The translations under genes and the position numbers were made by a program. DNA of 62,000 nt, taken from Octopus vulgaris (lineage: Eukaryota). A model generated the notes under the pieces. It was not told the origin of the DNA and did not search any database. It saw only the letters and a list, made by a program, of their open reading frames with translations. This document shows positions 19,674-20,192 of the stretch, piece by piece; position 1 is the first letter of the stretch; each line of letters starts with the position of its first letter. Location: the NCBI GenBank assembly GCA_951406725.2, contig OX597815.1, forward strand, positions 35,484,001 through 35,546,000, read 5' to 3'.

Positions 19674-20192
19674 AGTTATCAGTAATAATATAGGGTGAAA
19701 TTAATTAATTTGGAATAGTCATCAATTACACCAAGTAGATTTCGGCATGTAAAAGCCTCATTCGAGGAAAGTTTAAGTAATACTAAGTAATTAAGGGTTT
19801 AGCAACGAGTTGCCTCACCACACACCGAATTTAGCTCGCTCTGATACTGAGTTGAGATGATGCCTTCTAGTATCTCGAAATTTAATATACAATTATTCAT
19901 AATTGTAGCGTCCTACGCTGATGAGAAAAGAAGTTGGGTAAGACATAATTATCTAATTCTTATGCTTTCCTAAAACTTAATTTCGAAACGTACGTCCGTA
20001 GGTGACTTAAAATTGTATGATAGATTGCCGTCATTTCATTCTCTCTTACCTGTCTGTGTTTGCCTTTCAAGTGCTGTGTTTTTACTGAGATCTCCCTTTT
20101 AGTAGAAAGAATAGCTATAACTCTTTGACTGCTATTTCTAAATTCGGTGTGTGGTGAGGCAACTCGTTGCTAAACCCTTAATTACTTAGTAT
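19674..20192. mobile_element. Non-autonomous hammerhead-carrying element (Penelope-like or retrozyme-like) between (TA)n arrays
   Basis: Perfect 55-bp inverted repeat at 19780-19834 and 20138-20192 flanks the hammerhead; long (TA)n on both sides; no ORF. Confidence 0.6.
19912..20002 (+). ncRNA. Type I hammerhead ribozyme motif with extended helix II
   Basis: Helix I CCTACG/CGTAGG; CTGATGA (19918-19924); helix II closed by G19925-C19984; GAAA (19985-19988); helix III AC-GTAC-GT; GUC cleavage triplet at 19994-19996. Confidence 0.85.

Follow-up and report, generated by a model that had tools for sequence, protein, structure and literature searches.

The hammerhead-bearing unit at positions 19675-20192 of the 62,000-nt stretch of Octopus vulgaris DNA analysed here (the window) is probably the product of a single retrotransposition event of the Penelope-like element (PLE) type into a (TA)n tract. 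The source RNA would be either the hammerhead-bearing 3' part of a PLE or a non-coding RNA, similar to retrozymes, that a PLE mobilised. The copy is solitary, having no partner hammerhead, no ORF and no tandem repeat, and is most likely an inert, dead-on-arrival insertion. It was young at the time of sequencing, as its two inverted arms are identical at 55 of 55 positions.

The unit is 518 bp long and lies between (TA)n tracts. From left to right it consists of an extension of 105 nt, an inverted copy of the 55-nt 3' end and a plus-strand copy of 358 nt. The flanks and parts are as follows.

19565-19674: left flank, (TA)55 (TRF period 2, 55.5 copies, 98% matches), presumably half of the target tract
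19675-19779, minus strand: extension of 105 nt outside the inverted arm, with no other copy in the window
19780-19834, minus strand: left arm, the terminal 55 nt of the element in inverted orientation, 100% complementary to 20138-20192
19835-20192, plus strand: copy of the hammerhead-bearing 3' region, 358 bp
20138-20192, plus strand: right arm, the 3' end of the plus copy, whose last three nucleotides (TAT) are common to the TA tract (microhomology)
20190-20359: right flank, a compound tract of (TA)n, then (TACA)n, then (CA)n (TRF 20190-20315)

The plus and inverted copies meet head to head at 19834/19835. On the minus strand, the unit's left part begins with the 55-nt 3' end and continues for 105 further nucleotides, past the point where the right-hand copy stops. 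The inverted repeat is perfect over 55 bp in blastn and over 53 bp by a repeat finder, and its outer three nucleotides (ATA/TAT) overlap the TA repeat. The first-pass annotation of this DNA had placed the hammerhead between perfect 55-bp inverted repeats in a unit flanked by (TA)n. Both the repeat and the flanks are present, but 105 bp (19675-19779) separate the left arm from the left (TA)n. Since the left arm is internal and the layout is like that of the control PLE loci described below, the repeat is read here as two head-to-head copies of one 3' end. Thus the arms are probably not a pair of transposon ends, although the first-pass annotation had spoken of an inverted-repeat element.

The plus copy contains no ORF of more than 42 aa on the plus strand, and the longest one in the element has 69 aa (stop-to-stop). 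A Pfam scan of the 131 ORF segments of at least 60 aa in the window, aimed at the reverse transcriptase (RT) and GIY-YIG endonuclease of PLEs, yielded no GIY-YIG domain and only one RVT_1 domain, of the LINE type. The unit is therefore non-coding, as had been proposed, with no long ORF of its own and no PLE-type RT or GIY-YIG ORF elsewhere in the window. The absence of these domains is expected for truncated or non-autonomous copies, and thus the locus itself is not an autonomous PLE. No direct repeat (tandem copy or pLTR) was found in 19675-20190 or in the rest of the window, nor did blastn find a second copy of the element in the window. The GC content of the element is 34.6%, and that of the window, which is rich in microsatellites, is 36.8%.

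Several other candidate assignments were rejected. A SINE or tRNA-derived origin is unlikely, as ARAGORN found no tRNA-like part. The ends are not piggyBac-like, as TTAA lies inside the repeat, which runs 10 bp further. Matches to mir-297, mir-1277, mir-3149 and mir-466 at 19600-19673 and 20189-20298 are spurious hits to TA and TACA repeats, far below the Rfam gathering scores.

The hammerhead, as read from the sequence, occupies 19912-20002 on the plus strand (91 nt), 196 nt from the 3' end of the element, and has the full set of core nucleotides. It is of type I, as helix I is the open-ended helix. Its parts, together with a small neighbouring hairpin, are listed below.

19888-19907, plus strand: small palindromic hairpin TACAATTAT-TC-ATAATTGTA immediately 5' of the hammerhead (blastn self-match, 90%)
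19912-19917, plus strand: 5' strand of helix I, CCUACG (DNA CCTACG), forming six Watson-Crick pairs with 19997-20002
19918-19924, plus strand: core box C3-A9, CUGAUGA (DNA CTGATGA)
19925-19984, plus strand: helix II, 60 nt (G19925...C19984), with four base pairs closed by G10.1-C11.1
19985-19988, plus strand: GAAA box
19985-19996, plus strand: GAAA box, helix III, GUAC loop and C17 taken together
19988-19995, plus strand: palindrome ACGTACGT (helix III and its loop)
19994-19996, plus strand: GTC (GUC) site, with U19995 and C19996
19997-20002, plus strand: 3' strand of helix I, CGUAGG (DNA CGTAGG)

Three helices surround the core, with helix I open and helix II closed by G10.1-C11.1. All required core positions are present, namely C3 U4 G5 A6 N7 G8 A9, G12 A13 A14, the A15.1-U16.1 pair and an H17 that is not G. 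The predicted cleavage site is between C19996 and 19997. Beyond its 4-bp base, helix II contains a 2x2 purine internal loop and then continues as an imperfect extended hairpin, in which AAGTT (19931-35) pairs with AACTT (19974-78) and CATAA (19944-48) with TTATG (19960-64). Helix III has two base pairs (A-U and C-G) and a GUAC loop, which together form the palindrome ACGUACGU. A complete type I hammerhead had been reported in the first-pass annotation, and every part of it was found where it had been placed, including the unusually long helix II with both of these pairings.

When the hammerhead is enforced in the 91-nt motif, the predicted energy is -15.8 kcal/mol, compared to an MFE of -19.0 kcal/mol; the hammerhead fold is thus less stable than the competing monomer fold by 3.2 kcal/mol. 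The centroid of the unconstrained 106-nt fold contains helices I and II, and the MFE of the same 106 nt has z=-1.04 against shuffles. Helix II alone (60 nt) folds with -10.7 kcal/mol (z=-2.2 against shuffles). Cofolding of two copies yields a double hammerhead of -46.2 kcal/mol, compared to 2 x -19.0 kcal/mol for the monomers. In this predicted dimer ACGUACGU forms an 8-bp helix III, consistent with the earlier suggestion that the palindromic helix III and loop permit dimerization. A palindromic helix III acting in dimers is known from PLE and metazoan hammerheads, most copies of which are solitary (PMC4209133), and the dimer mode has likewise been described for metazoan hammerheads (PMC7229834). 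By analogy with the canonical type I tertiary contact, the internal loop that follows the four base pairs of helix II may take the position of loop 2, and the unpaired region after the six base pairs of helix I that of loop 1. The template RNA was reconstructed as 19835-20192 followed by the reverse complement of 19675-19779, 463 nt in total. It is no more structured than shuffled sequences (z=-0.77), and on this basis a viroid-like rod structure was rejected.

The motif was compared with chance expectation using a descriptor looser than the observed structure. It required at least five pairs in helix I, at least four pairs in helix II with a helix II length of up to 80 nt, the boxes CUGANGA and GAAA, at least two pairs in helix III, and H17 other than G. 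The hammerhead at 19912-20002 is its sole match on both strands of the 62 kb, and when the full window was shuffled 300 times with its dinucleotides preserved, a match of any kind appeared in only 2 cases. A metagenome scan for both core boxes plus helix III as here returned 107 loci, which is about the chance number by our own estimate. Helices I and II were both paired in none of these 107 loci, the best ones having 3+1 or 0+4 pairs. Thus the two helices represent real information additional to the boxes.

The Rfam model RF00163 (Hammerhead_1) aligns over its full length (1-45/45) to 19912-20002 on the plus strand with 23.6 bits. The E-value is 5.4e-4 when the query is 116 nt long, and 56 nt of helix II are treated as an insertion. 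The score is below the gathering score of 34 for this family, and the E-value scaled to the whole window is about 0.3; the alignment thus corroborates the hammerhead without being independent proof of it. In wider scans the motif was missed: the scan of the whole window at gathering thresholds gave no match, and the E-value scan of 701 nt gave only microsatellite artefacts such as mir-297. Rfam silence is weak evidence for hammerheads of the PLE type, as the bona fide minimal PLE hammerhead of the spider control locus also had no match.

The control PLE loci were obtained as homologues of the Poseidon_Ac protein, L110 from a spider and L111 from the beetle Tenebrio. They share the same order of elements: target duplication, tail, inverted 3' end, plus copy, target duplication. 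In L110 the target duplication aatgataaatgt is present on both sides, the tail is 28 nt long and the inverted 3' end has 76 nt (99%); the plus copy carries a minimal hammerhead at 6007-6047 and ends at 6099. In L111 the target duplication is cagaattattcta, again on both sides, the tail has about 33 nt and the inverted copy is 1031 nt long (100%). The control hammerheads lie about 50-60 nt from the 3' end. The strict descriptor missed these minimal hammerheads; a relaxed one recovered the Poseidon_Ac junction and the L110 motif and missed the degenerate motif of L111. The tails of the two loci (L110 3892-3919 and L111 ~2722-2754) have a conserved core, TTTCACGGCCGgTGTC in L110 and TTTCACGGCCGtTGTC in L111. 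The sequence similarity suggests that a site of RT initiation or endonuclease recognition may be conserved in that clade of PLEs.

The octopus unit has the same architecture. Insertions of PLEs are truncated at the 5' end, and in many cases a truncated copy lies beside them in inverted orientation and a tail of 30-40 bp is present on one side (PMC8557442). Here an inverted, 5'-truncated copy abuts the main copy and a longer, tail-like extension is present at one end only; the hammerhead is in the terminal region, 196 nt from the 3' end, and TA repeats border the unit on both sides. Naiad PLEs, in which canonical hammerheads are missing, have a documented bias towards (TA)n targets. For Neptune, a bias towards microsatellites has been hypothesised; the other PLE clades have hammerheads near the 3' end (PMC8557442). 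The Poseidon PLE protein cleaves and extends both target strands, and the tail is located between the two sites where RT starts (PMC11167929). Coleoid cephalopods are rich in PLEs (PMC13282606, PMC8967140). Since the layout within the TA microsatellite is that of PLE insertions, as seen in the controls and described in PMC8557442, the first-pass suggestion of a PLE derivative or retrozyme pointed to the right neighbourhood.

The similarity to PLEs of the Penelope/Poseidon, Neptune, Nematis and Hydra clades thus covers a type I hammerhead that precedes the 3' end and has a palindromic helix III, a solitary non-coding copy with an inverted 3'-end copy abutting the plus copy (PMC8557442, PMC4209133, PMC11167929), an extension past the 3' end on one side, the absence of poly(A), and insertion into a microsatellite. 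On the other hand, the locus has no RT or GIY-YIG ORF and no pLTR; its extension is 105 nt long, compared to control tails of 28-33 nt and published ones of 30-40 nt; and its hammerhead is 196 nt from the 3' end, compared to about 50-60 nt in the controls. The motif itself is also different. The Poseidon-type and spider control hammerheads are minimal, with a bulge and a helix II of 6-8 bp, whereas here helix I has six base pairs, there is no bulge before position 10.1, helix III is looped and helix II has 60 nt. The lack of an RT or GIY-YIG ORF, a pLTR and a tandem copy, the long extension, the larger distance of the hammerhead from the 3' end, the canonical-like motif, its Rfam score below the gathering score and its absence from wider Rfam scans, the 60-nt helix II and a template no more structured than shuffles all count against the PLE reading.

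In form, the hammerhead is closer to those of retrozymes than to the minimal ones of the Poseidon-type controls. Metazoan non-LTR retrozymes are tandem repeats of about 170-400 bp with canonical type I hammerheads, such as newt satellite 2 and the retrozymes of Schistosoma, mussel, coral and axolotl. [quoted passage not shown] Retrozymes are also non-coding with a GC content below 45%, as is the octopus element; monomer copies are common among them, and they are related to the pLTRs of PLEs (bioRxiv 10.64898/2026.07.22.740005). The relation of non-LTR retrozymes to PLEs and the large number of their monomer copies are documented in the same source and in PMC7229834. The octopus locus is unlike retrozymes in having no tandem repeat, a helix II of 60 nt and a template that is not unusually structured. 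A retrozyme is defined by at least two units in tandem that each carry a type I hammerhead; with its single hammerhead and no tandem, the locus is at most a monomer derivative of one.

In the preferred PLE-type reading, the GIY-YIG endonuclease of a PLE would have cut both strands of the TA tract, and both DNA ends would have served as primers for reverse transcription of the 3' region of an RNA with a hammerhead. This RNA may have been the pLTR-type terminus of a PLE or a non-coding derivative, similar to a retrozyme, that PLE enzymes carried. The right-hand cDNA would have started at UAU, matching the TA target, and extended for 358 nt across the hammerhead. The left-hand cDNA would have started 105 nt further downstream on the template, thus producing the "tail", and would have reached 160 nt. 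Joining of the two cDNAs head to head at 19834/19835 would yield the perfect 55-bp inverted repeat. The hammerhead would be simply a part of the source RNA, in which it is presumed to be active: in tandem or multimeric transcripts, two copies may pair via ACGUACGU, form the 8-bp helix III and cleave after GUC.

The inverted repeat and the TA on both of its sides are also compatible with a TA-duplicating MITE. The candidate would be a miniature transposon of the Tc1/mariner or Stowaway type at the edge of the TA tract, spanning 19783-20189 (407 bp) with perfect 52-bp TIRs and a TA duplication at 19781-82 and 20190-91; the hammerhead would be captured or fortuitous and the 105 bp to the left would be ordinary flank. 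Like Stowaway and Tc1-mariner MITEs, the unit is short and non-coding, with a perfect inverted repeat and TA beside both arms, and the octopus is rich in Tc1-Mariner and MITE families (PMC13282606). Moreover, TA arrays are dense in this region, six of them being situated in 15.7-20.3 kb, so that a second array 105 bp away is not impossible. However, although each 52-bp arm is followed by TA, on the left the TA-bounded insert reaches 105 bp past the arm, which is thus internal. TA tracts bounding the whole 518-bp unit are expected if the entire unit is the insert, and the one-sided extension is arranged exactly as in both control PLE loci. We know of no hammerheads in MITEs. A chance hammerhead within about 400 bp is very improbable, given its frequency in shuffles of the full 62 kb, and no hammerhead-carrying DNA transposon is known, whereas PLEs and retrozymes do carry them (PMC4209133, PMC7229834). 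We consider such a transposon unlikely. A further reading is that the unit belongs to an undescribed cephalopod family of non-coding hammerhead elements, with a canonical type I core and a helix II of about 60 nt, whose monomers are moved by PLE enzymes specifically into TA microsatellites or, less likely, that it is the first MITE-like element with a working hammerhead. In such a family, the internal loop of the helix II extension would stand in for loop 2. This reading is tentative and rather doubtful at present.

Another possibility is that the hammerhead is a fortuitous match in an unrelated repeat or duplication, without ribozyme ancestry, and that the AT-rich "helix II" is a mere spacer. 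Indeed, with helix II allowed to reach 80 nt, chance matches become more frequent, about one per 9 Mb by extrapolation from the 2 of 300 shuffles, and such matches are expected in a genome-wide scan. The Rfam score of 23.6 bits is under the gathering score of 34, with E about 0.3 across the window, and the MFE of the isolated 106 nt is no better than that of shuffles (z=-1.04). However, there are features beyond the boxes: the 6-bp helix I, the G10.1-C11.1 pair, the palindromic helix III with its loop, and a helix II in which four base pairs lead into an internal loop and a structured extension (z=-2.2). Both helices together occurred in none of the 107 metagenome box pairs, and the motif sits within an insertion built like those of the sole retroelement class known for hammerheads. 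A coincidence is thus very unlikely. Finally, the locus itself might be an active or host-adopted ribozyme unit, whose transcript cleaves itself, either as a monomer or in trans together with RNAs from sister copies, and gives rise to a processed or circular RNA with a function. The core is intact, the copy is young, with arms identical at 55 of 55 positions, and invertebrate type I hammerheads with a 2-bp helix III and a tetraloop can cleave co-transcriptionally (PMC7229834). On the other hand, there is one hammerhead alone with no tandem partner, its fold is 3.2 kcal/mol weaker than the competing monomer fold, and the 463-nt template is not unusually structured. In addition, hammerheads of the PLE type are weakly active in vitro, and in Anolis no reads end at the predicted cut site (PMC4209133, PMC11167929). 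An active locus is therefore highly improbable.

No relatives of the element were found in pattern scans of genome contigs and viral contigs. An exact look-up of four ORFs from the element and its flank gave none on record, and a homologue search with the 69-aa stop-to-stop ORF gave no candidates. The Poseidon_Ac protein search gave 1530 PLE proteins, with insects, reptiles and metagenomes among the matches listed; no cephalopod names occur among the 120 listed. The syntenic 20 kb of Argonauta hians contain no hammerhead and no similarity to the element. A literature search found no published description of hammerheads in cephalopods.

In the remainder of the window, exons of tryptophanyl-tRNA synthetase (TrpRS) were found at 43390-54765 on the plus strand, tail to tail with the terminal exon of the mitochondrial ribosomal protein mL49 at 61616-62000 on the minus strand. 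The latter exon, at the right edge of the window, is 71% identical to the Argonauta hians protein. The order and orientation of the two genes are the same in A. hians, and the nucleotide identity of exons is 77-85%. The mL49 identity and this synteny support a cephalopod host. At least 23 kb separate the hammerhead unit from the first recognised TrpRS exon downstream of it.

A number of other repeats were observed. LINE-type fragments are located at 29557-32204 (minus strand), 41759-42948 (minus strand) and 59140-59614 (plus strand); the RVT_1 match is at 30379-31110 on the minus strand (E=2.5e-18), and a weak PHD-finger-like match was found at 42110-42589. An ORF fragment at 23331-23582 (plus strand) has a weak match to Helitron_like_N (E=1.3e-4, below the Pfam cut-off) and is possibly a Helitron remnant. 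At 45463-46148 there are 1.9 copies of a 358-bp unit (87% matches), overlapped by a foldback-like inverted repeat of 269 nt, whose arms (45546-45814 and 45880-46148) are 65 nt apart and 97% complementary. A 48-bp minisatellite (9 copies, 96%) adjoins two tandem 182-bp SINE-like units at 5950-6750, and an inverted copy of the latter unit occurs about 2.6-2.8 kb away at 9348-9476 (93-94%). Finally, the introns and flanks of TrpRS contain a dispersed repeat family with internal tandem units of 47-63 bp (GGCACATAAAAAGCACCATCCGATCGTGGCC...). Its locations in the window and those of similar repeats in the syntenic locus of A. hians (L112) are as follows.

46817-46916, 52244-52421, 55201-55328, 57388-57493 and 59861-60117: GGCACATAAAAAGCACCATCCGATCGTGGCC repeat family, window
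~12827-12872, 13869-14011 and 17599-17759: GGCACATAAAAAGCACCATCCGATCGTGGCC-like repeats, A. hians locus L112

The presence of similar sequences in A. hians indicates that this family is probably an old octopod SINE-type repeat.

The novelty implied in the first-pass annotation did not hold, as (TA)n targeting and palindromic dimer hammerheads had already been published (PMC8557442, PMC4209133, PMC7229834). More generally, there is no new mechanism at this locus: PLE and retrozyme hammerheads, the dimer-type helix III, inverted truncated copies and microsatellite bias (towards (TA)n in Naiads) are all published, and the 60-nt helix II is a mildly unusual variant. The locus would illustrate, in compact form, the signature that PLE insertion leaves in a TA microsatellite, with head-to-head copies and a one-sided extension. 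This would be useful for repeat annotation, as such units are easily misread as MITEs. If the PLE-type reading is right, cephalopods would join the animals with documented hammerhead-bearing PLE or retrozyme sequences.
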